Below, piece by piece: positions 34,575 to 56,225 of a stretch of DNA of 64,000 nucleotides. Under the pieces are notes generated by a model. The model saw nothing but the letters and a program-made list of their open reading frames with translations. It was not told the DNA's origin and made no database searches. The position numbers were made by a program, and so were the translations under genes. Position 1 is the first letter of the stretch; each line of letters begins with the position of its first letter. The DNA lies in contig OZ218963.1 of NCBI GenBank assembly GCA_965112735.1, positions 124,001 to 188,000 of the forward strand. Direction: 5' to 3'. Source of the DNA: Phaeosaccion multiseriatum. Taxonomy: Eukaryota > Protista > Ochrophyta, other classes.

Positions 34575-35324
34575 CGCCTGTGTGTGTGTGTGCCCTTCTA
34601 AACACACCACACCACACCACAGATGCGGAGTACTCCTGCAGGAGGTGGTCCGAGAGGGCTGCTCCTTCTGCTGCGTGGGCACGCTCGGCGCCGCCCTCGA
34701 CGGAGGAGTCTCGCTCGTGGCGGGCATGCAGCCAGGACGGCAACATTGTGCAGATAGCCGTGCCCGTGCCACAGCTACTGCGCAAGACCGCCTCTCGACG
34801 CAAGTGGTTGTTGTCAGGGTGGGGTCTCTTCTTCTCCATCCCTCCGCTGGCTTCTTGCTTTGACTTGCTTCCGCCCTCTCCGCCTCTGGCTTCTGCTTAT
34901 CGGGCAGGGGGCAGAGAAACCTCGCCTGCCTGAGAAGCCAGAAGCCAGCGAGACTGCGGCCAGAAGCCCGAAGCCAGGGGTCACAGGAGGGGGCTACGGC
35001 CCAGAAGCAAGCCAGGAGCCAGAGAAAAACCTCGCCCTGGAGCCGACCTCCGGGGTACTAGGGAGGAGGAATGCGTGATGATCCGTGATCCGTGACGGAT
35101 TACCATCCAAAAGTAACAAGATTCGCCCCCCCCAGATGAGAAGAGTTTTATGAAAAGAAAATGACCCCTGCCCCTTGCCAAGAAAGAGCAAACCGTTCTT
35201 GCGGAGCGTTCTACACCGCTGAACCTCAACCTCTATATGGGGATGCTTATCACATCCCCCATCTCATCGTTCCCAGCAAACCAAAAGGAGGAGCGAAGAG
35301 CGAGAGCAAATACCAAAGCCAAGG

Positions 35325-38300
35325 ATGGTGAGCATGGGTAAAACCCTGCTGCTACTGCCGCTCGTAGCCATGGTGGTTGGGGCCAGCGGCGACGAGCAAA
35401 TCATGACCCGAAAATACGTGAGTTGTGCGAGGATGAACAAAGAGCGGAGTATCAAAAAGAAACACGAAGGGAGGGGAGAGAGACAGCCAGCTGATGAGGA
35501 GTCGGCTGAGGTGCATCACCTTACTGACTTGTGGCTGACCCGGCTGTTGCTTGCTGCATTCTTCTTGCCTGCGTGGGGGGTGACTTGGTCTGTTCGTCAC
35601 GGCCGGGCCACGGTTGGTTGCATCCCGCCAGCCGGTCTTCACCCTGACATCCTGACATCCTCCCTTGCCTCTCCTTTCCCTCGCTCCCTCCCAGAACCCT
35701 CACAAGGAACGTCAAGCGGAGGCCAAGCGTGTAGATCTAAAGAGTGCCAAGGCCAAGCGCATCGATCGAAAGAGTGCCACCATCATCAGCATTAAAGCTG
35801 ACCCAGCCCATACCTCATCGATGTACAAGGCGTGCACGTCCTTTAGCGAGATGCAAGATGCCGCCTCGGCACTGAAGCAGGACCTGGGCACTAAAGGGGC
35901 GGTGAAGGTGAGAGGTCAGGAGGAGGAGGAGGAGGAGGAGGTGAGGAGGTAATGGAAAGACCACGGCACCACGCGTGGTGGTCTACTTCAGCACTACGAC
36001 AACACGCGTGGCGTTGATGATAGCTACGGTCACCAAAGCCACCACACACTTTCGTAGCTTTTGTAGGGTCTCCTGCACAACTCCAACGCCACTCCTCCCC
36101 TCCCCCCTCGCTCCGTCTGCCTTCCTCCTGCCACCACTTGTAGGTGACCTTGAGTGATGGTGGTGCGGACCTGAGCTGCTTCACCTTCTCCGCCCCCTTG
36201 AAGTATGGCAAAGCCCTCGCCGCCGCGCCAAGCACGAAGCACCTGCAAAGGTAAGTGTGGCACTGTACTGAGATACGGCCAGCCAGACCAACCCGGCCTG
36301 AGCGTTTCCACAGGCAGCGGCTGCCTACTGTTGGCTGGTGCTGCCGCCGTCACCCTCCGTTCTCCCCACCACACACGTACTTCAGGCAGCCTCACGACAC
36401 ACCACCCACCACTCGCTCTCTGTACCTCGATCCTCCCCGCCTCGGTCGCTTTGTCTTGTCTGTTCCTTGGTTTCCACCACTGGCAGCGTCACAGCCCTCG
36501 CCCCCGGAAGTCGCAGGCTCCCCTCTGCTGCTGCACACGCGAATCAAAAGATGGTGAAGAACGTGAAGGCGGAGAGCAAGAGCGCTATGATCATGAAGGC
36601 GAAGAACAAGAAGGCGATGATCATGAAGGCAGAGAGCAAGAAGGCGATGATCATGAAGGCAGAGAGCAAGAAGGCGATGGACATGAAGGCGAAGAAGAAG
36701 AAGCACAAGCCCTTCCGCAAGCCCAACCGCGAGCTGCAGAACCTGACGGCGAAGAGCAAGAAGGGCAAGCCCGTCCGCAAGCCCAACCGCGAGCTGCAGA
36801 CCTCGACACCACTGCCTCCCGGTTGCCACAGCCATGCTGACGTCTCGTAAGTACGATCACTACTCATTCAGCTGTCCCTCTTCCTTTCACTCACAGATAC
36901 AAGTACCTTCCTCTTGTGTGGTTCCCTTTTCCATTCCGCAGAGAGAGCAAGAGTGTGGGTTTCTCGAATGTACTTTTAATTTGGGGTCTCACTTATTTTA
37001 TTTTTATTTTTTATGTTCTCTCCGCCCGAACCTGTTCTCGCCGCTGGTTGCACCTCACCCCCTCAGAGAGTGGATTGGTGACGGTTTCTGTGATGGAGGA
37101 GAATATTACGATGAAGTATGCGGTGAGTAACTAGGTGGGGTGGGTGGTACTATTTTACAGGCCCAGTATGTCGCCAGCTGTGTGTCAGCCGGCTTGTTGA
37201 TGCCCCTCCTCTCTACTACTCTGCTCTACTCTGCCCTCTAATGGCTCCTCCCCTTCGCTCCGCCTCTCGTCGTGATTGTACGTGTTCACAGGGTATGACC
37301 GTCGTGACTGCATCGGAATTGTGCTGCCTCCAGGCTGTTTGGTAGCCACCCCGTAAGTACGATCATTAATCATTCAGCTATCCCTCTTCCATCCATACAC
37401 ACACATACATATATCCCTCTTTCATTCCTCAGAGAGTAAGAGTCGGCGTTCCTGGAATGAAAATCGATTTGTATTAATTTGTGTGTTTTTTGTTGTTGTC
37501 TCTCCGCCTGAACCTGTTCTCGCCGCTGGTTGCTCCTCACCTCGTCAGAGGGTATTTTGGCGACGGTGACTGCGACGGAGGAGAATACAACACGGAAGTA
37601 TGCGGTGAGTGAGTGGGTGGGTGGTACAAGTCGCTCTATTTGTAGGTCAAATATGTCGCCAGCTGTGAGCCAACAGGTTGACACTACTCTGTTCTACTCT
37701 TCCCTCTAATGACTCCTCCCCTTCCCCCCAATGCTTGTCGTGATTGTGCGTGTTCACAGAGTTTGACGGTGGTGACTGCCTCGGCTCAGAGACACCAAGC
37801 CCAGAAGCAGCACCTGTACTGCCTCCAGGCTGTGTGGTAGACATCCCGTAAGTACGATCACTAATCATTCAGCTGTCGGCCGCTCTTCCATTCGTACACA
37901 TACATATATCCCTCTTCCATTCCTCAGAGAGTAAGAGTGGGCGTTCCTGGAATGAGAATCAATTCGCATTAATTTGTGTGTTTTTGTTGTCTCGCCGCCT
38001 GAACCTGTTCTCGCCGCTGGTTGCACCTCACCCCATCAGCTCGTGGATTGGTGACGGTTTCTGTGATGGAGGAGAATATAACACGGAAGTATGCGGTGAG
38101 TGCGTGGGTGGGTGGTACAAGTAGCTCTATTTGCAGGTCAAATATGTCGCCAGCTGTGAGCCAACAGCTTGACACTACTCTGTTCTACTCTTCCCTCTAA
38201 TGACTCCTTTTCCCCCCAATGCTTGTCGTGATTGTACGTGTTCACAGAGTTTGACGGTGGTGACTGCCCCGGAGAAGGCTCAGCGACACCAAGCCCAGAA

Positions 38301-41300
38301 GCAGCACCTGTACTGCCTCCAGGCTGTGTGGTAGACATCCCGTAAGTACGATCACTAATCATTCAGCTGTCGGCCGCTCTTCCATTCGTACACACACAAT
38401 CCACACACACATACATATCTCCCTCTTCCATTCCTCAGAGAGAAGAGTGGGCGTTCCTGGAATGAAACTCAATTGGTATTAATTTTTGTGTACGTTTTTT
38501 TCTCTCCGCCTGAACCTGTTCTCGCCGCTGGTTGCATCTCCCCCCCTCAGATCGTGGATTGGTGACGGTTTCTGTGACGGAGGAGAATACAACACGGAAG
38601 TATGCGGTGAGTGAGTGAGTGGGGTGGGTAGCTCTACTTTGCAGGTCAAATATGTCGCCAGCTGTGAGCCAACCAGCGTGATACTACTCTGCTCTACTCT
38701 GCCCTCTAATGGCTCCTCCCCTTCGCTTCGCCTCTCGTCGCGATTTTGCGTGTTCATAGAGTTTGACGGTGGTGACTGCATCGGAGTCACAACATCTACA
38801 ACATTCACATTTCCGACTGCCGGTCCCACAGCAACACCCGTACTGCCTCCAGGCTGCGAGGTACCCAACCCGTAAGTACGATCACTACTCATTCAGCTGT
38901 CCCTCTTCCATCCATACACGCACACATATACAATTCATTCCCTTCCCCTTATGTGGTTCAACTTTCCATTCACAGAGCAAGTGTGGGTGGTATGATATTT
39001 GTTTGTAATCCGGCATTAATTTGTGTGTGTTTTTCTTTTCTCTCCGCCTCATAACATCAATTTGTAATATTTTGTGGGTGTTTTTTTTTCTTTTGTCTCC
39101 GCCTGAACCTGTTCTCGCCCCTGGTTGCACCTCACCCTCCATCAGATTTTACTTTGGTGACGGCTTGTGCGACGGAGGAGAATACAACACGGAAGTATGC
39201 GGTGAGTGAGTGGGTGGGTGGGTGGGTGGTAGCTCTACTTTGCAGATCAAATTTATCTCGCCAACTATCCAACCAGCGTGATACTACTCTGCTCTACTCT
39301 GCCCTCTAATGGCTCCTCCCCTACGCTCCGCCTCTCGTCGGATTGTGCGTGTTCACAGAGTTTGACGGTGGTGACTGCATCGGAGTTGTACTGCCTCAAG
39401 GCTGTGTGGTAGACATCCCGTAAGTACGATCACTAATCATTCAGCTGTCCCTCTTCCATCCATGCACGCACACATATACTTGTAGTGCAATTTATGACCT
39501 TCCCCTTATGTGGTTCAGTTTTCCATTCCGCAGAGAGAGTAAGAGTGGGCATGACAAATATGTAATTTGTACTTCATTACTTTGTGTGTTTTTTTTCTTT
39601 TCTCTCCGCCACATGACATGAATTTGTATTAGTTTGTGTGTTATTGTTGTTGTTGTCGTTGTTGTTGTTGTCTCTCCGCCTGAACCTGTTCTCGCCGCTG
39701 GTTGCACCTCCCCGCCTCAGAGGGTGGATTGGCGACGGTTTCTGCGACAGAGGAGAATATAACACGGAAGTATGCGGTGAGTGGGTGGGGGGTTTTGCAG
39801 GTCAAATGTCTCGCCAGCTGTGAGCCAACCAGCTTGATACCACTCTGCTGCTCTACTCTGCCCTCTAATGGCTCCTCCCCTTCGCTCCAACTCTTGTCGT
39901 GATTGTGCGTGTTCATAGAGTTTGACGGTGGTGACTGCATCGGAGTTACAACAACTACAACATTCACATTTCCGACTGCCGGTCCCACAGCAGCACCCGT
40001 ACTGCCTCCAGGCTGTGTGGTAGACATCCCGTAAGTACGATCACTAATCATTCAGCTGTCCCTCTTCCATCCATGCACGCACACATATACAATTCATTGC
40101 CTTCCCCTTACGTGGTTCAATTTCCTCCACAGAGCAAGAGTTTTGGGTTTCGGCATGGCTGACATTACTAGGTTGTATTCCGGCATTAATTCTTTTCTCT
40201 CCGCCTGTTCTTGCCACTGGTCGCACCTCACCCTCCATCAGATGGTACATTGGTGACGGTTTCTGTGATGGAGGAGAATATAACACGGAAGTATGCGGTG
40301 AGTGAGTGGGTGGGTGGTACAAGTACATCTACTTTGCAGGTCAAATATGTCGCCAGCTGTGAGCCAACAGCTTGATACTACTGCTCTACTCTGCCCTCTA
40401 ATGGCTCCTCCCATTCGCTTCGCCTCTTGTCATGATTGTACGTGTTCACAGAGTTTGACGGTGGTGACTGTGCGGCGCTGCCTCCAGGCTGTGTGGTAGA
40501 CATCCCGTAAGTACGATCATTAATCATTAAGCTGTCCCTCTGACATTCGCACACACACACACCACACACACATACATATACCCCTCTTCCATTCCTCAGA
40601 GAGTGAGAGTGGGCGTTCCAGGAATGAAAATCAATTGTGTACTAATTTGCATGTTGTTGTTATTGTCTCTCCGCCTGAACCTGTTCTCGCCGCTGGTTGC
40701 ACCTCACCCCATCAGCTCGTGGATTGGTGACGGTGTCTGCGACGGAGGAGAATATAACACGGAAGTATGCGGTGAGTGAGTGGGTGGGTGGGTGGTACAA
40801 GTAGCTCTACTTTGCAGGTCAAATATGTCGCCAGCTGTGAGCCAACAGCTTGATTCTACTCTGCTCTACTCTGCCCTCTAATGGCTCCTCCCCTTCGCTC
40901 CAACTCTCGTCGTGATTGTGCATGTTCACAGAGTTTGATGGTGGTGACTGCCTCGGATTTCCGACCTTCAGTCCCACAGCAGCACCCGTACTGCCTCCAG
41001 GCTGCGTGGTAGACATCCCGTAAGTACGATCACTAATCATTCAGCTGTCCCTCTTCCATCCATACACGCACACATAAAAAAGTATTCACCTTCCCCTTAT
41101 GTGGTTCAATTTTCCATTACACAGAGCAAGAGTGTGGGTTGCATGACATTAGTTTGTAATCCGGCATTACTTTGTGTGTTTTTTCTTTTCTCTCCGTCTC
41201 ATAACATCAATTTGTAATAATATGTGTGTTTCTTTTCTCTCCGCCTGAACCTGTTCTCGCCGCTGGTTGCACCTCACCCCATCAGGTTTTGGATTGGTGA

Positions 41301-43850
41301 CGGTTTCTGCGACGGAGGAGAATATAACACGGAAGTATGCGGTGAGTGAGTGGGTGGGTGGGTGGTACAAGTAGCTCTACTTTGCAGGTCAAATATGTCG
41401 CCAGCTGTGAGCCAGCAGCTTGATTCTACTCTGCTCTACTCGGCCCTCTAATGGCTCCTCCCCTTCGCTCCGACTCTTGTCGTGATTTTTCGTGTTCATA
41501 GAGTTTGACGGTGGTGACTGCATCGGAGTTACAACAACATTCACATTTCCGACTGCCGGTCCCACAGCAGCACCCGTACTGCCTCCAGGCTGCGTGGTAC
41601 CCATCCCGTAAGTACGATCACTAATCATTCAGCTGTCCCTCTTCCATCCATACACGCACACATAAATTAATCACCTTCCCCTTATGTGGTTCAATTTTCC
41701 ATTACACAGAGCAAGAGTGTGGGTTGTGACATTAGTTTGTAATCCGGCATTAATTTGTGTGTTTTTTTCTGGTTTTTTTCTTTTCTCTCCGCCTCATACC
41801 ATCAATTTGTAATAATGTGTTTCCTTTCTCTCCGCCTGAACCTGTTCTCGCCGCTGGTTGCACCTCACCCCATCAGGTTTTGGATTGGTGACGGCATCTG
41901 TGACGGAGGAGAATATAACACGGAAGTATGCGGTGAGTGAGTGGGTGGGTGGGTGGTACAAGTAGCTCTACTTTGCAGGTCAAATATGTCGCCAGCTGTG
42001 AGCCAGCAGCTTGATTCTACTCTGCTCTACTCGGCCCTCTAATGGCTCCTCCCCTTCGCTCCGACTCTTGTCGTGATTTTTCGTGTTCATAGAGTTTGAC
42101 GGTGGTGACTGCATCGGAGTTACAACAACATTCACATTTCCGACTGCCGGTCCCACAGCAGCACCCGTACTGCCTCCAGGCTGCGTGGTACCCATCCCGT
42201 AAGTACGATCACTAATCATTCAGCTGTCCCTCTTCCATCCATACACGCACACATAAATTAATCACCTTCCCCTTATGTGGTTCAATTTTCCATTACACAG
42301 AGCAAGAGTGTGGGTTGTGACATTAGTTTGTAATCCGGCATTAATTTGTGTGTTTTTTTCTGGTTTTTTTCTTTTCTCTCCGCCTCATAACATCAATTTG
42401 TAATAATATGTTTCCTTTCTCTCCGCCTGAACCTGTTCTCGCCGCTGGTTGCACCTCACCCCATCAGGTTTTGGATTGGTGACGGCATCTGTGACGGAGG
42501 AGAATATAACACGGAAGTATGCGGTGAGTGAGTGGGTGGGTGGGTGGTACAAGTAGCTCTACTTTGCAGGTCAAATATGTCGCCAGCTGTGAGCCAACCA
42601 GCGTGATACCACTCTGCTGCTCTACTCGGCCCTCTAATGGCTCCCCCCCTTCGCTCCAACTCTCGTCGTGATTGTGCGTGTTCACAGAGTTTGATGGTGG
42701 TGACTGCCTCGGATTTCCGACCTTCAGTCCCACAGCAGCACCCGTACTGCCTCCAGGCTGCGTGGTAGACATCCCGTAAGTACGATCACTACTCATTCAG
42801 CCGTCTTTCTGCCATTCGTACACACACACACCACACATACATATACCCCTCTTCCATTCCTCAGAGAGGAAGAGTGGGCGTTCCTGGAATGAAAATCAAT
42901 TTTGTACTACGAAGTCTTAATTTTGAGAGTTGTTGTTGTTGTTTTTGTTGTTGTCTCGCCGCCTGAACCTGTTCTCGTTGCTGGTTGCACCTCACCCCAT
43001 CAGCTTGTGGATTGGTGACGGTTTCTGCGATGGAGGAGAATATAACACGGAAGTATGCGGTGAGTGAGTGGGTGGGGTGGGTGGTACTACTTTACAGGTC
43101 AAAGCGTCGCCAGCTGTGAGCCAACCAGATTGATACTACTCTGCTCTACTTCACCCTCTAATGGCTCCTCCCCTTCGCTTCACCTCTTGTCGTAATTGTG
43201 CATGTTCACAGAGTTTGACGGTGGTGACTGTCCGGTACTGCCTCCAGGCTGTGTGGTAGACATCCCGTAAGTACGATCATTAATCATTCCAGCTGTCGGC
43301 CGCTCTTCCATTCGTACACACACACACACCACACACACATACATATATCCCTCTTCCATTCCTCAGAAAGTAAGAGTTGGCGTTCCTGGAATGAGAACCA
43401 ATGGGTATTAATTTGTGTGTGTTTTTTTTACTTTTCTTTCCGCCTGAACCTGTTCTCGCCGCTGGTTGCACCTCACCCCATCAGCTCGTGGATTGGTGAC
43501 GGCATCTGTGACGGAGGAGAATATGACACGGAAGTATGCGGTGAGTGAGTGAGTGAGTGGGTGGGTGGGTAGGTGGTAGCTCTAGTACTTTGCAGGTCAA
43601 CTTATCTCGCCGGCTGAGAGCCAACCAACTTAATACTACGCTGCTCTACTCTGCCCCTCTCATGGCTCCTCCCCTTCGCTTCGCCTCTCGTCGTGATTGT
43701 GCGTGTTCACAGAGTTTGATGGTGGTGACTGCCTCGGATTTCCGACCTTCAGTCCCACAGCAGCACCCGTACAGCCTCCCCCAGGCTGTGTGGTAGACAA
43801 CCCGTAAGTACTATCACCAATCATTCGCTCTTGCATTCGTACACACACAC

Positions 43851-43905
<55 letters not shown>

Positions 43906-44988
43906 CTTTCCATTCCTCAGAGAGTAAGAGTGGGCGTTCCTGGAATGAAAATCAATTGGTATTGGTATTAATTTTTGTGTACGTTTTTTTCTCTCCGCCT
44001 GAACCTGTTCTCGCCGCTGGTTGCACCTCACCCCCTCAGACGGTGGTTTGGTGACGGTTTCTGTGACGGAGGAGAATACAACACGGAAGTATGCGGTGAG
44101 TGAGTGAGTGGGGTGGGTGGTACTACTTTACAGGTCAAAATGTCGCCAGCTGTGAGCCAACCAGCGTGATACTACTCTGCTCTACTCTGCCCTCTAATGG
44201 CTCCTCCCCTTCGCTTCGCCTCTCGTCGTGATTGTGCGTGTTCACAGAGTTTGACGGTGGTGACTGCATCGGAGTTGTACTGCCTCCAGGCTGTGTGGTA
44301 GACACTCCGTAAGTACGATCACTACTCATTCACCCGCCGCTCTGCCATTCGCAAACACACACACACACACACACACATGTATATATATAGTCTCTCCGCC
44401 TGAACCTGTTCTCGCCGCTGGTTGCTCCTCACCCCATCAGAGGGTTTATTGGCGACGGTGTATGCGACGGAGGAGAATACAACACGGAAGTGTGCCTGTT
44501 TGACGGCGGTGACTGCGTGGTGGAACTTGGCACTCTTACGCCTTCACCAGCAGGTGCCACCCCTGCGCCTTCAGCAGCAAGGTAAGTAAGTACCCAGTAC
44601 TCACACATACACTGAGGTGTTTCCAGTACTTTGATCATTTCAGTTTCACACCGGCAGTGGCACTGAGTGTGTGTGCATGCGTATGCCTGTGTGTTTGCGT
44701 GCCGGCGTATAAGTATAAGTGAGTGTGTCTCTGTGTGTGCGCGCCTATGACTTCAGGCTCTGTGCCTCAAATCTCTGTTTCCTCTCTCCTCCTCCCTCTT
44801 CTTTGGAGGCAGGCCCGCGACACCTTCCGCGGTGGACGACGGCTCTGGGGGTTGCACCACTGCTTCGGACTGCTACGCCCTCACCACGCCCGTGGACATG
44901 GCCTATCTGGATGACAACCATAAGGGTACGTAAGGGTACGTGAGGGTGTGCGTGGTGCCGCACAGATAGAACGAGCCCGAGAGAGAGT

Positions 44989-45019
<31 letters not shown>

Positions 45020-45071
45020 AGACAGAAAGAAAGACAGAGACACACACAGACAGACAGACAGACAGACAGGC

Positions 45072-45106
<35 letters not shown>

Positions 45107-45108
45107 TG

Positions 45109-45158
<50 letters not shown>

Positions 45159-45160
45159 TG

Positions 45161-45191
<31 letters not shown>

Positions 45192-45423
45192 CGGGACAGA
45201 AGAGCTGCCTGTGGGTAGCAGGCAGGAGGGAGGGTGTGGTCAAGGAAGGTTTGTTTCGAAGCTTCGGAAGAAGGAGGCATCACCTCCATCTCGCAGCCCG
45301 TGTGCAACAGCCCGGCCCCCCTTTTAGCGTCTCAGACACACAGACAGACAAGACAGAAAGAAAGACAGAGACACACACAGACAGATGGATAGACAGACAG
45401 ACAGACAGGCAGACAGACAGATG

Positions 45424-45457
<34 letters not shown>

Positions 45458-45936
45458 TGGATAGACAGACAGACAGACAGACCGGGACAGAAGAGCTGCC
45501 TGTGGGTAGCAGGCAGGAGGGAGGGTGTGGTCAAGGAAGGTTTGTTTCGAAGCTTCGGAAGAAGGAGGCATCACCTCCATCTCGCAGTCCGTGTGCAACA
45601 GCCCGGCCCCCCCTTTTAGCGTCTCAGACACTTGATTGACTCTCCACTCTGTGAATGTCTGCCCCGACTAATCGCCCACCCTTTCCTTCCTTCCTTCCTC
45701 CCTCCCTCCCTCCCTTCGTTCTTTTCCTTCTTTCCTCCCTCCCTTCCTTCCTCCCCCCTTTCCTCCCGCCCTCTCCCGCTCGTTCTCTCGCTCCCCCCCT
45801 GGCTGCTGCACACACACACAGAGCTGTACTGCGACCCCACCTGCTCGGAAGAAGGCACTTCCTTTGATGGCACTCTCTGCAACTTCTTCGGCCTGGGCCA
45901 AGACTGCCGCGCATGCTTCCTCGAAGCAGGTGTGTG

Positions 45937-45971
<35 letters not shown>

Positions 45972-46269
45972 GTGTTTGTGTGTGTGTGTTTGTGTGTGTT
46001 TGTGTGTGTGTAGGCCTGTGTAATATGTGCGTGCGTGGTGAACAGTGCCGCCTTCTCCTCCCTCCTGCCCTCTCCTCCTCCCTCACCGCCACCCTCCCTC
46101 CGACCCCCCTGTGCTTGTCCTTGTCTGTCCCTGTGTCACTCTCTCTTCCTCCTTCTGTATCACCAATCCCTCAGGTGCCCAGCAATACCTGACCAACAAC
46201 CCCACCCTCACGTGTGATGTCATTAACATGTGCGCGGGAGAGCCTGCTTGCGAAGAGGTGGAGGTGTGA
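35325..46269 (+). CDS. Secreted protein with a basic pro-region, 15 tandem LNR (Lin-12/Notch)-like repeats and a Cys-rich C-terminal domain
   Basis: Signal peptide [19 protein letters not shown]. Exons at about 35325-35417, 35695-35907, 36144-36250 and 36487-36847, then 14 pairs of 56-nt A exons and variable B exons plus one fused exon (44441-44581), then 44813-44925, 45822-45929 and 46175-46269. All join in frame. Repeat consensus [35 protein letters not shown]. Confidence 0.88.
36848..44581 (+). repeat. Tandem array of ~480-600-bp intron-exon-intron-exon units (15 units)
   Basis: Recurring CGCCTGAACCTGTTCTCGCCGCTGGTTGCACCTCACCCCATCAG acceptor, GAAGTATGCG|GTGAGT donor, GTGTTCACAG|AGTTTGACGG acceptor and CATCCC|GTAAGTACGATCA donor. 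Confidence 0.95.
44990..45630. repeat. Intronic tandem duplication (~300 bp) containing (GACA)n
   Basis: CCGGGACAGAAGAGCTGCCTGTGGG...TTTAGCGTCTCAGACAC is repeated at about 45191 and 45482. Confidence 0.85.
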
Positions 46270-46649
46270 GTGACAAACAATTGAAGAAACAATTGGGCTC
46301 CAAGAGTGACAAACAATTGAAGAAACAATTGGCAATTGACGACGACAACCTCTGAGATGTTCTTGCCCACTGACTGCTGCTTTCGTGGCGGCCATGAGTC
46401 GCCGGAATAGACTCTGGAGGGAGGAAGAGAGAGAGGGAGGGATGGGGGGAGTGCGAGGGAGGGAGGGAGGGAGGGAGGGAGTCGGTCCCAGCCAGTCCAG
46501 ACACGCCTGGCGGCCCATCTAGGGTCAGAGAGGGCCGTAGGTCCTCGCTCGGCCTAGTTCTAGGCCGAGGGCGTGAATTTGCCCCCTTCCTGGCTGGGCT
46601 GGCCCGGAGCCCAACCAAATGTACCATGAGTTTGTTTAATGTATACTAG

Positions 46650-47076
46650 AAGTACGTATCTTCTTTATCCCTTCACTCTTCTGCCTCTCTCTACCTCTCT
46701 CGCTTCGCCCTCCCTTCCTCCACCCCGGGGTCCACAACTTTTGCTCTACCTCTGCTCTGGCTGAGGTCAGGCAGCGCCACATGAAGAGGTGCCTCGCTCT
46801 CCGCCCCCTCCTCCACACACACAGGTACAAGCGCCTTCCTCTTGTGTGGTTCTCTTTTCAAGAGTGTGGGTCCCTCGAATGACATGTGTTTTTGGTTGTT
46901 GATTGTATCTCTGCCTGAACATGTCCTCGCCGGTGGTTGCACCTATATATATATATATATATATATCGACTCCAATCAGGTGTTCGATATTGATAAAGTC
47001 AAATCCATAAACTGAAAACTGAAAACTGGTTGCACCTCACCCCATCAGATCGCAGACTGCTGACGGTGAATGCTAA
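46650..47076 (+). pseudogene. Degenerate orphan copy of the LNR intron/exon-A unit downstream of the stop codon
   Basis: CTGCCTGAACATGTCCTCGCCGGTGGTTGCACC (46911-46943) and TGGTTGCACCTCACCCCATCAG|ATCGCAGACTGCTGACGGTGAATGCTAA match the array acceptor and the start of exon A, ending in TAA. Confidence 0.6.
46945..47026 (-). mobile_element. 82-bp insertion with a (TA)n tail and an 11-bp TSD (5'-truncated non-LTR retroelement-like)
   Basis: TGGTTGCACCT is duplicated at 46934-46944 and 47027-47037. The array units carry only a single copy of this 11-mer. Confidence 0.6.
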
Positions 47077-47274
47077 GCCCCTCACCCCCTCCCTCCTCTC
47101 CTTCCTTTAGCCAACTCACACCTTCCTCCGCTGCGTTTGAAGCGAGCACCAACTCATGCCTGGCCTTTAGAGCAAACTAGAGCACCAACTGCCCAAAAGA
47201 GGAACCAAGTAGCCGCCCATCCACTGCCATCCATCGACGCTGCCTCGCAACACCACCCATCACCACCACGCCCC

Positions 47275-56225
<8,951 letters not shown>

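Follow-up and report, generated by a model that had tools for sequence, protein, structure and literature searches.

A tandem array of 15 four-cysteine LNR modules in a probably secreted repeat protein of Phaeosaccion multiseriatum

The canonical LNR of metazoan proteins contains six cysteines, joined by the disulfides C1-C5, C2-C4 and C3-C6. To our knowledge, the LNR ('Notch domain') proteins of stramenopile algae and diatoms are numerous and none has a known function. In Ectocarpus, Notch-domain gene families show variable copy number (bioRxiv 10.1101/307165; PMC3879662), and the number of Notch-domain copies differs between related genomes (bioRxiv 10.1101/307165). The brown-algal ROCO-LRR and NB-ARC-TPR genes carry one repeat per exon, in 'phase 0' exons of 72 or 126 nt (PMC3341825). 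These exons are multiples of 3, and each is therefore movable on its own.

The window analysed here is a stretch of 64,000 nucleotides of the P. multiseriatum genome (assembly GCA_965112735.1, contig OZ218963.1, positions 124,001 to 188,000); positions below are those of the window. It contains an array of 15 LNR units on the + strand, at 37067-44581. The initial annotation had described 15 two-exon modules. This holds for 14 units, made of an exon A and an exon B, but unit 15 has no A/B intron and forms one fused exon. The units are as follows.

Unit 1: 37067-37352, + strand, exon A 37067-37122, exon B 37292-37352
Unit 2: 37549-37847, + strand, exon A 37549-37604, exon B 37760-37847
Unit 3: 38040-38341, + strand, exon A 38040-38095, exon B 38248-38341
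Unit 4: 38551-38871, + strand, exon A 38551-38606, exon B 38760-38871
Unit 5: 39146-39419, + strand, exon A 39146-39201, exon B 39359-39419
Unit 6: 39721-40030, + strand, exon A 39721-39776, exon B 39919-40030
Unit 7: 40242-40506, + strand, exon A 40242-40297, exon B 40452-40506
Unit 8: 40716-41019, + strand, exon A 40716-40771, exon B 40932-41019
Unit 9: 41286-41607, + strand, exon A 41286-41341, exon B 41502-41607
Unit 10: 41877-42198, + strand, exon A 41877-41932, exon B 42093-42198
Unit 11: 42468-42775, + strand, exon A 42468-42523, exon B 42688-42775
Unit 12: 43004-43266, + strand, exon A 43004-43059, exon B 43212-43266
Unit 13: 43485-43803, + strand, exon A 43485-43540, exon B 43713-43803
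Unit 14: 44040-44308, + strand, exon A 44040-44095, exon B 44248-44308
Unit 15: 44441-44581, + strand, unsplit LNR and Pro/Ala/Ser-rich tail in a single exon
Relic: 46790-47073, + strand, 3' of the stop codon, degenerate B-to-A intron and broken exon-A stub (alignment; nhmmer match at 47026-47073)

Splice sites are canonical across the whole array. Exon A measures exactly 56 nt in all 14 split units, with acceptor CAG and donor GTGAGT, and is flanked by a phase-2 intron on its 5' side and a phase-1 intron on its 3' side. Exon B (acceptor CAG or TAG, donor GTAAGT) measures 61, 88, 94, 112, 61, 112, 55, 88, 106, 106, 88, 55, 91 and 61 nt in units 1 to 14, a range of 55-112 nt in which every length is 1 mod 3. 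The fixed exon A (phase 2 to 1), the variable exon B and the restriction of exon B indels to multiples of 3 had all been pointed out before and were found again in each split unit. The array introns measure 142-172 and 132-301 nt. Their length differences are not multiples of 3, and the frame is therefore kept in the exons only. These introns fall within the structural LNR module and not at its borders. The periodicity begins before unit 1, with a B-type end at 36811-36846 followed by a B-to-A type intron at 36847-37066. Where the array is unique, short-read unitigs (four DNA runs, one sample) agree with it fully; in these DNA unitigs intron depth equals exon depth, and no contig spans a unit. 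The search of sequencing runs for the locus matched these four DNA runs and no RNA run. Three unitig 'joints', each seen in one run only and with a shorter side of 27-47 nt, were rejected as structural variants or splice forms and are read as repeat-crossing unitigs. Cross-matching from other units probably explains the minority letters at 40037 and 43678.

The array is the internal part of a larger + strand gene, whose predicted exons extend from about 35325 to 46269. Outside the array, they are as follows.

Exon 1 (predicted): 35325-35417, + strand, start codon and signal-peptide-like N-terminus, 31 aa, phase 0 donor GTGAGT, read from the sequence
Exon 2 (predicted): 35695-35907, + strand, family-specific conserved N-terminal region, 71 aa
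Exon 3 (predicted): 36551-36846, + strand, Lys-rich 30-nt tandem repeats (TRF), placed by frame analysis
Exon C1 (predicted, C-terminal): 44813-44925, + strand, conserved, with Cys, 76-79% amino acid identity to all three paralog loci
Exon C2 (predicted, C-terminal): 45822-45929, + strand, five Cys, 97% amino acid identity to all three paralogs
Exon C3 (predicted, C-terminal): 46175-46269, + strand, stop codon TGA at 46267-46269, 90-94% amino acid identity to paralogs

The signal peptide of exon 1 was assessed by eye, and a 67% identical stretch was found by tblastn upstream of the paralogous array at locus L015. Exon 2 shows 79% amino acid identity to the equivalent position upstream of the arrays at L013 and L015. 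The 5' border of exon 3 is uncertain, with a second in-frame phase-0 acceptor at 36385/36386. Its 3' end is a B-type half unit (LPPGC...) that supplies Cys1 of module 1 and matches an nhmmer profile of B ends at 36811-36871. Exon C2 is the best-conserved stretch of the four-gene LNR family, and the C-terminus encoded by exon C3 is acidic, not hydrophobic. Pfam and homology searches were run exon by exon, joined frames serving for frame checks and dN/dS. Among all flanking exons, the Pfam scan revealed no family at or near the cut-off: none was found for exon 2 or for exon C1 in its correct frame, and exon C2 gave a weak, sub-threshold LNR-like match (14.6 bits). ESM Atlas searches with the N- and C-terminal private exons likewise gave no usable match, and no Atlas look-alike of exon 2 was found.

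The predicted product would comprise, in this order, a signal peptide, a basic Lys-rich stretch, 15 four-cysteine LNR modules joined by Pro/Thr/Ser/Ala linkers of variable length, and a conserved Cys-rich C-terminal tail. Since no hydrophobic segment was seen in the translated exons outside exon 1, it appears to lack a membrane anchor; therefore a secreted matrix or cell-surface-associated Ca2+-binding repeat protein is most likely, in which both secretion and Ca2+ binding are predicted properties. The earlier description of a modular, probably secreted protein agrees with this hydrophobicity pattern and with the conservation of the signal-peptide-like exon in a paralog. The term 'receptor', used in the same description, did not hold: no transmembrane, kinase or other signalling part was found by Pfam in the flanking exons.

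The LNR nature of the repeat, proposed in the initial annotation, was borne out by Pfam, by alignment and by fold prediction. Unit 15 scores above the PF00066 cut-off of 21.2 bits (24.5 bits with 46 aa, 26.1 bits with 30 aa), the match covering positions 14-35 of the 36 of the profile, and the corresponding portion of the 14 split units is near-identical. A six-frame PF00066 search of the whole genome gave nothing at E<=0.001 because introns cut each module; as the unsplit unit alone passes Pfam, this null was rejected as evidence of absence. HMMER aligns unit 15, residue by residue, to LNR-A, -B and -C of Notch1, and the window modules share with the LNRs of the Notch1-3 NRR and of PAPP-A the motif GDGxCD...N..(E)C.(F/W)DGGDC. 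An AlphaFold2 model was obtained for a paralog module rather than for one of the window, namely the first, intronless, module of the paralog on contig 12 (L013:8003-8122:-), with a mean pLDDT of 92.3. Search for similar structures in the PDB using Foldseek returned only LNR structures among the matches listed: the NRR of Notch1/2/3, the NMR structure of a Notch1 LNR, or PAPP-A (TM 0.52-0.65, rmsd 0.9-2.3 A). With a domain of only 40 residues, the E-values are weak (best value 0.13).

Unlike the six-cysteine Notch LNR, each window module has four cysteines. An invariant Tyr aligns with Cys4 of Notch1 and Cys2 is absent; the canonical three disulfides are therefore reduced to two at most. These would be expected to join Cys1 to Cys3 and Cys2 to Cys4 of the module, the counterparts of C1-C5 and C3-C6 in the Notch LNR. 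On sequence grounds, the repeat is a four-cysteine subtype of the LNR family and not a canonical Notch LNR. Only unit 1 departs, slightly, from the full set of cysteines and the DGGDC motif, which the other 14 units retain. The acidic and Asn positions of the Ca2+ site (CD..N...C.DGGDC) are likewise kept in 14 of 15 units, unit 1 having DRRDC, and share alignment columns with those of Notch1 LNR-A/B/C. These Asp/Asn positions bind Ca2+ in animal LNRs, and the window modules would be expected to do so. The arrangement also differs from that of Notch, with 15 tandem copies separated by mucin-like linkers as compared to three LNRs packed on the heterodimerisation domain (HD), and Pfam scans revealed no EGF, HD, transmembrane or ankyrin part in the window gene.

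Closer relatives are found in marine protists. The module matches 800 protein clusters (E<=0.001), whose members contain as many as 21 repeats and belong to Pfam Notch. The four-cysteine LNR subtype, with the shared consensus YPxCxVxxPxxIGDGxCDGGxYNTxECGxDGGDC, is common in marine protists (metagenomic and diatom proteins). However, the best-scoring relatives read (P0001, P0003 and P0011) begin with a long N-terminal region containing hydrophobic stretches, and another, P0006, shows a 7TM-like Pfam match that is weak and below the threshold, whereas the predicted product of the window gene opens with a signal peptide and a Lys-rich head and ends in a Cys-rich tail that is private. The one relative checked for this is an uninterrupted ORF; in the window gene, each internal module is cut by two introns.

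A whole-unit DNA search of the genome returned at least 71 pieces in at least four candidate regions, all of them LNR loci; unit copies were found at four loci only, on contigs 14, 12 and 16 (twice), with 15, 5, 8 and 9 units, respectively, of the same A/B design. Introner-like mobile introns were rejected on this search, which matched the four LNR loci only. The array gene is one of a small family of four paralogs. The three other arrays have the 56-nt exon A, an exon B of 1 mod 3 and equal intron classes, and their N- and C-terminal flanking exons are in common with the window gene. The terminal intronless module recurs in two of them (contig 12 and one contig 16 gene). The window gene is nevertheless the largest. 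Compared with its paralogs, it has a Lys-rich 30-nt repeat of its own, lacks the leading intronless LNR present in two of them, and varies most at the first codon of exon A, where the others mostly have Ser.

Sequence comparison of the units points to exchange between them. The nearest neighbour of a unit switches between exon A, A/B intron, exon B and B/A intron. Starting at the A/B intron, unit 9 matches unit 10 at 99-100% identity, and their exons A differ in a patch of four differences. Units 8 and 11 have identical exons B, and the introns that follow are 72% alike. Unit 11 is a mosaic, with the exon A of unit 10, the exon B of unit 8 and a following intron of the other class. This segment mosaicism shows growth and change of the array by unequal crossing-over and gene conversion. 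The proposal that the gene varies by unequal recombination is consistent with these segment-wise neighbours and with the 5, 8, 9 and 15 units of the four paralogs.

Could the array generate diversity somatically, by joining any exon A donor to any later exon B acceptor and giving many isoforms from one gene? We consider such combinatorial splicing very unlikely. The donors of A and the acceptors of B are all near-identical and phase-compatible, as stated in the initial annotation, but tandem duplication of a two-intron unit makes phase compatibility automatic, so that it is no evidence for combinatorial splicing. With an exon A of 56 nt and an exon B of 1 mod 3, skipping a single exon shifts the frame; only removal of whole A+B (or B+A) pairs preserves it. 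In all four genes each B/A intron ends in a well-conserved stretch of 35-45 nt, yet its conservation is no higher than that of synonymous sites. Functional ultra-conserved introns were rejected on the same ground, conservation at the intron ends not exceeding that at third codon positions, and the introns described earlier as 'almost invariant' do not surpass synonymous sites; their similarity is better explained by an array that is young or homogenised than by a function of the introns. Dscam-type cassette splicing by docking/selector RNA pairing was also rejected: within 35000-47500, no complement of at least 14 nt (at most one mismatch) to the conserved intron heads or tails was found, and inverted repeats in that region are microsatellites only. 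Short introns favour intron-defined, sequential splicing, and that of the array is probably constitutive and sequential. The reading of the array as a decaying pseudogene or a coding-like satellite has a very slight probability. The broken unit downstream of the gene (46790-47073) would suit it, but 29 consecutive exons of the array stay in frame with no stop codon, the linker indels (six or more independent events) invariably measure a multiple of 3, unlike those of introns, the cysteines and DGGDC are kept as described above, and the architecture is retained in three paralogs. Purifying selection on the module core (dN/dS ~0.2) argues in the same direction: pairwise dN/dS among units, 0.36 overall, falls to 0.21 when the three variable codons are left out, with a dS of 0.24, comparable to the intron diversity of 0.12-0.20.

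The variable residues raise the question of diversification in the germline. The reported series at the first exon-A residue (E,G,S,S,F,G,W,S,F,F,F,L,S,R,G), the W/Y/F that follows and the F/D/L/V/I after GDG were reproduced exactly, and variation is concentrated as claimed, two codons outrunning synonymous sites. Parsimony counting over 29 units with a family-wide synonymous rate gave omega of ~2.8-3.0 at exon-A codon 1 (P ~1e-5, uncorrected) and ~2.4-2.6 at codon 7, after GDG (P ~1e-4, uncorrected), in a test that presumes a single tree for units that recombine and at codons picked post hoc; its ~4 synonymous 'changes' per site reflect heavy homoplasy, and this makes the counts too high wherever a site has several states. 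Divergence, within the array as well as from the paralogs, is greatest at exon A positions 1-8 (0.37-0.40, as against 0.21-0.25 for intron and third positions). Together with the differing unit numbers of the paralogs and the precedents in PMC3341825 and PMC11378527, these values would suit a rapidly evolving repertoire for adhesion or for recognition (of self/non-self, gametes, pathogens or surfaces), in which unit number, unit order and two putatively exposed residues per module are under diversifying selection, as in the brown-algal LRR/TPR genes. But in 141 modules of the four-cysteine subtype from other organisms, including the marine-protist arrays, the highest entropy falls on the same two positions, as expected for loop positions that are generally unconstrained. 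The predominance of Ser at the first position in paralogs and the lack of a signalling domain in the Pfam scans of the flanking exons also argue against such a repertoire, which we hold to be unlikely; it would extend the explanation by tandem amplification rather than exclude it. An omega above 1 at two codons need not occur in a purely ordinary repeat protein.

We therefore regard as probable that the locus is a tandemly amplified LNR repeat region of a single, constitutively spliced gene for a secreted protein. One internal module carrying two introns would have been amplified in tandem to give the array, in which 28 of the ~33 predicted introns of the gene are duplicates. Unequal crossing-over and short gene-conversion tracts between near-identical units would then keep the array in flux. 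This amplification, combined with selection for an open frame, would have left as by-products the constant phases of the exons, linker indels that keep the frame and the similarity between introns. Constitutive, sequential splicing would be expected from introns of 130-300 nt with uniformly strong sites. In each module, the loop residue that precedes the conserved aromatic and the one between GDG and the second Cys may be free to vary or mildly diversified.

As in the brown-algal ROCO-LRR and NB-ARC-TPR genes, short repeated exons encode the repeats, recent paralogs differ in repeat number and dN/dS appears raised at a few repeat positions, with the reservation for the window gene that these sites were chosen post hoc in recombining units. 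In contrast, the LNR unit consists of two exons, neither of them a multiple of 3, with borders inside the module. Moreover, the brown-algal proteins carry a GTPase (ROC-COR) or NB-ARC domain, which was not found by Pfam in the flanking exons of the window gene.

The array gene represents an ordinary mode of repeat-protein growth and by itself reveals no new diversity-generating mechanism. It seems improbable to us that the four-gene family forms a diversifying extracellular recognition or adhesion repertoire, with positive selection, polymorphic arrays and isoforms made by A+B skipping; if true, the family would be an LNR-based counterpart of the brown-algal LRR/TPR exon-shuffling genes. The locus provides a clean, fully resolved example of how an LNR array grows by copying a module together with its introns, and it shows which two positions of the module can change freely. 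Its product is a reasonable candidate for studies of Ca2+ binding, of the secretome and of cell adhesion, and for comparison between strains.

The array at 37067-44581 (+ strand) consists of 15 tandem units with a period of about 480-590 nt, as delineated by sequence reading and pattern scans; TRF picks up just its most regular portion. In 14 units the repeat is split into two exons. Exon A is 56 nt long, with a CAG acceptor and a GTGAGT donor; the A/B intron that comes next is 142-172 nt in length. Exon B measures 55-112 nt, with a CAG or TAG acceptor and a GTAAGT donor; the intron after it (B/A intron) spans 132-301 nt. The lengths of the 14 B exons are all 1 mod 3; they form seven classes, implying at least six independent in-frame indels, whereas the array introns follow no mod-3 rule. 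The tandem two-exon LNR array reported in the initial annotation is real: the joined frame contains no stop codon and every listed residue series was reproduced. The count of 15 two-exon modules holds for 14 split units, unit 15 (44441-44581) being fused, with no inner intron. The locus occurs in four sequencing runs, all of them DNA from one sample and none RNA; their unitigs confirm the unique parts of the array assembly. The periodic structure starts at 36811, where the preceding exon has a B-type end, and the intron upstream of unit 1, 36847-37066, belongs to the B-to-A type. The two introns interrupt the structural LNR module itself instead of separating modules: an LNR takes its Cys1 from the 3' end of the preceding exon B, and its closing FDGGDC from the 5' end of the exon B that follows.

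The unsplit unit 15 scores 24.5-26.1 bits against Pfam PF00066 (Notch/LNR), above the cut-off of 21.2, which bears out the LNR assignment. In HMMER alignments it matches human Notch1 LNR-A, -B and -C. Unlike the Notch1 repeats, the array module carries an invariant Tyr at the Cys4 position and four cysteines in all, which makes it an LNR without the C2-C4 disulfide. For an intronless paralog module (not a module of the window), an AlphaFold2 model built with 140 related modules as alignment reached a pLDDT of 92. The Foldseek matches listed for this model were all Notch NRR, the Notch1 LNR NMR structure or PAPP-A, with weak E-values, as expected for a domain of 40 residues.

A DNA search of the genome with one unit identified copies at four loci only: this array, one locus on contig 12 and a pair on contig 16. 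According to profile searches and exon delimitation, the four genes share the exon design and have 15 (window), 5, 8 and 9 units; the window gene is the largest of the four paralogs. Its flanking exons were compared with the paralogs by tblastn, each exon singly:

35325-35417, + strand, predicted signal-peptide-like exon, 67% identity, found in one paralog
35695-35907, + strand, predicted 71-aa exon, 79% identity
44813-44925, 45822-45929 and 46175-46269, + strand, three predicted C-terminal exons, 76-97% identity

Intron phases are compatible at all flanking-exon junctions; the start of exon 3 is uncertain (36551 or 36386). The predicted protein would comprise a signal peptide, a Lys-rich head, 15 LNR modules joined by Pro/Thr/Ser/Ala linkers, a Cys-rich tail and an acidic C-terminus. 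The head is encoded by 30-nt repeats found by TRF. These Lys-rich coding repeats, just 5' of the array (36548-36800), have periods of 30 nt (about 4.7 copies) and 60 nt (about 2.6 copies) and occur in this paralog only; at the corresponding position a contig 16 paralog has a shorter stretch of KNKKT type. Scanning each flanking exon revealed no Pfam family, and apart from exon 1 no hydrophobic segment. Since neither a membrane anchor nor a signalling part was found in these exons, the term "receptor" used in the initial annotation is unsupported. The predicted intron between the C-terminal exons C1 and C2 is filled by long (AGAC)n/(CAGA)n microsatellites and a 291-nt duplication (44991-45631). 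ORF pieces on the - strand at about 47400-51000, with metallo-beta-lactamase/tRNase Z-like motifs (HEATF..., HPHADHHLG) and broken up by GT/CA and CCT microsatellites, probably belong to a neighbouring gene.

The last module is also intronless in two paralogs, and so is the first module in two (L013:8003-8122:- on contig 12 and the matching place in L014 on contig 16). Both introns are, in contrast, present in every amplified internal module, which suggests that the copying started from a single internal module that had introns. Among the 14 split units, nucleotide diversity is 0.13 in exon A, 0.12 in the A/B intron, 0.145 in exon B and 0.20 in the B/A intron, against a pairwise dS of 0.24 in the module core. 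The introns, long stretches of which were initially described as almost invariant, are indeed similar, but their conservation does not exceed that of silent sites. In a comparison of 36 family units, the final 45 nt of the B/A intron varied roughly as much as third codon positions. Intron similarity is thus best read, from these comparisons, as recent copying or homogenisation rather than function. The nearest neighbour of a unit changes from segment to segment. Units 8 and 11 have identical B exons and 96% identical A/B introns, yet B/A introns of two classes (72%); unit 11 has its exon A in common with unit 10. Over about 530 nt, units 9 and 10 show 99-100% identity, but four differences fall within 7 nt of exon A, a patch that units 11 and 13 share. 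This mosaic is the signature of unequal crossing-over and short conversion tracts, in agreement with the unequal recombination proposed earlier. A relic at 46790-47073, some 520 nt past the stop codon, consists of a degenerate B-to-A intron copy and a broken exon-A-like stub; it contains an AT-rich insert of about 93 nt, with the 10-nt direct repeat GGTTGCACCT on either side.

Combinatorial splicing of A and B exons is unlikely. The phase compatibility that inspired it arises automatically when a unit with two introns is duplicated, and is no evidence for it. With exon lengths that are not multiples of 3, skipping a single A or B would shift the frame, and in-frame removal is possible only as whole A+B pairs. 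No stretch of 14 nt or more complementary to the conserved intron ends was found anywhere in the gene (35000-47500 searched). A diversifying array has a low probability as well. The module core is under purifying selection (dN/dS 0.36 overall, 0.21 without the three variable codons). A parsimony counting test on 29 units from four genes compared non-synonymous changes per codon with the family-wide synonymous rate. With sites chosen beforehand and units that recombine, omega was about 2.8-3.0 (P ~1e-5) at the first full codon of exon A and 2.4-2.6 (P ~1e-4) at the codon between GDG and Cys. Two of the three proposed variable codons thus exceed the synonymous rate; the W/Y/F codon has an omega close to 1, and every other codon stays below 1. 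The excess is suggestive only. Because the units recombine, counts are inflated on any single tree, as the roughly four "synonymous changes" at each silent site show; the sites had been picked in advance; and across 141 modules from unrelated organisms, entropy peaks at these two columns. The two codons may simply be the loop positions under least constraint in this LNR subtype.

A HMMER scan of 1.84 billion representative proteins retrieved 800 clusters at E<=0.001, of which 287 reached E<=1e-10; individual proteins carry as many as 21 repeats. Relatives inspected share the module consensus and Pfam Notch; diatom "LNR domain-containing proteins" make up the nearest clusters in the ESM Atlas. 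The module's closest relative, L016:798-4298 on a JGI metagenome contig, is a single uninterrupted ORF of 1166 aa with 19 LNR repeats and a long N-terminal region with hydrophobic stretches. In P0006, another relative, a weak, sub-threshold 7TM-like Pfam match stands beside the LNR array. For Ectocarpus, two reports describe Notch-domain families varying in copy number, including 2 and 1 copies (bioRxiv 10.1101/307165), and 16 Notch-domain genes expressed in gametes (PMC3879662). In brown-algal exon-shuffling genes, each repeat corresponds to a single exon whose length, 72 or 126 nt, is divisible by 3, and the protein has an attached signalling domain (PMC3341825; PMC11378527). In contrast, the window's LNR unit is made of two exons, neither a multiple of 3, and no signalling part was found. 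The one relative checked for introns is encoded by an uninterrupted 3.5-kb ORF, so that two introns per module are a feature of the window's lineage. Overall, the gene is genuine and well preserved, and its two-exon LNR unit has been amplified in tandem.
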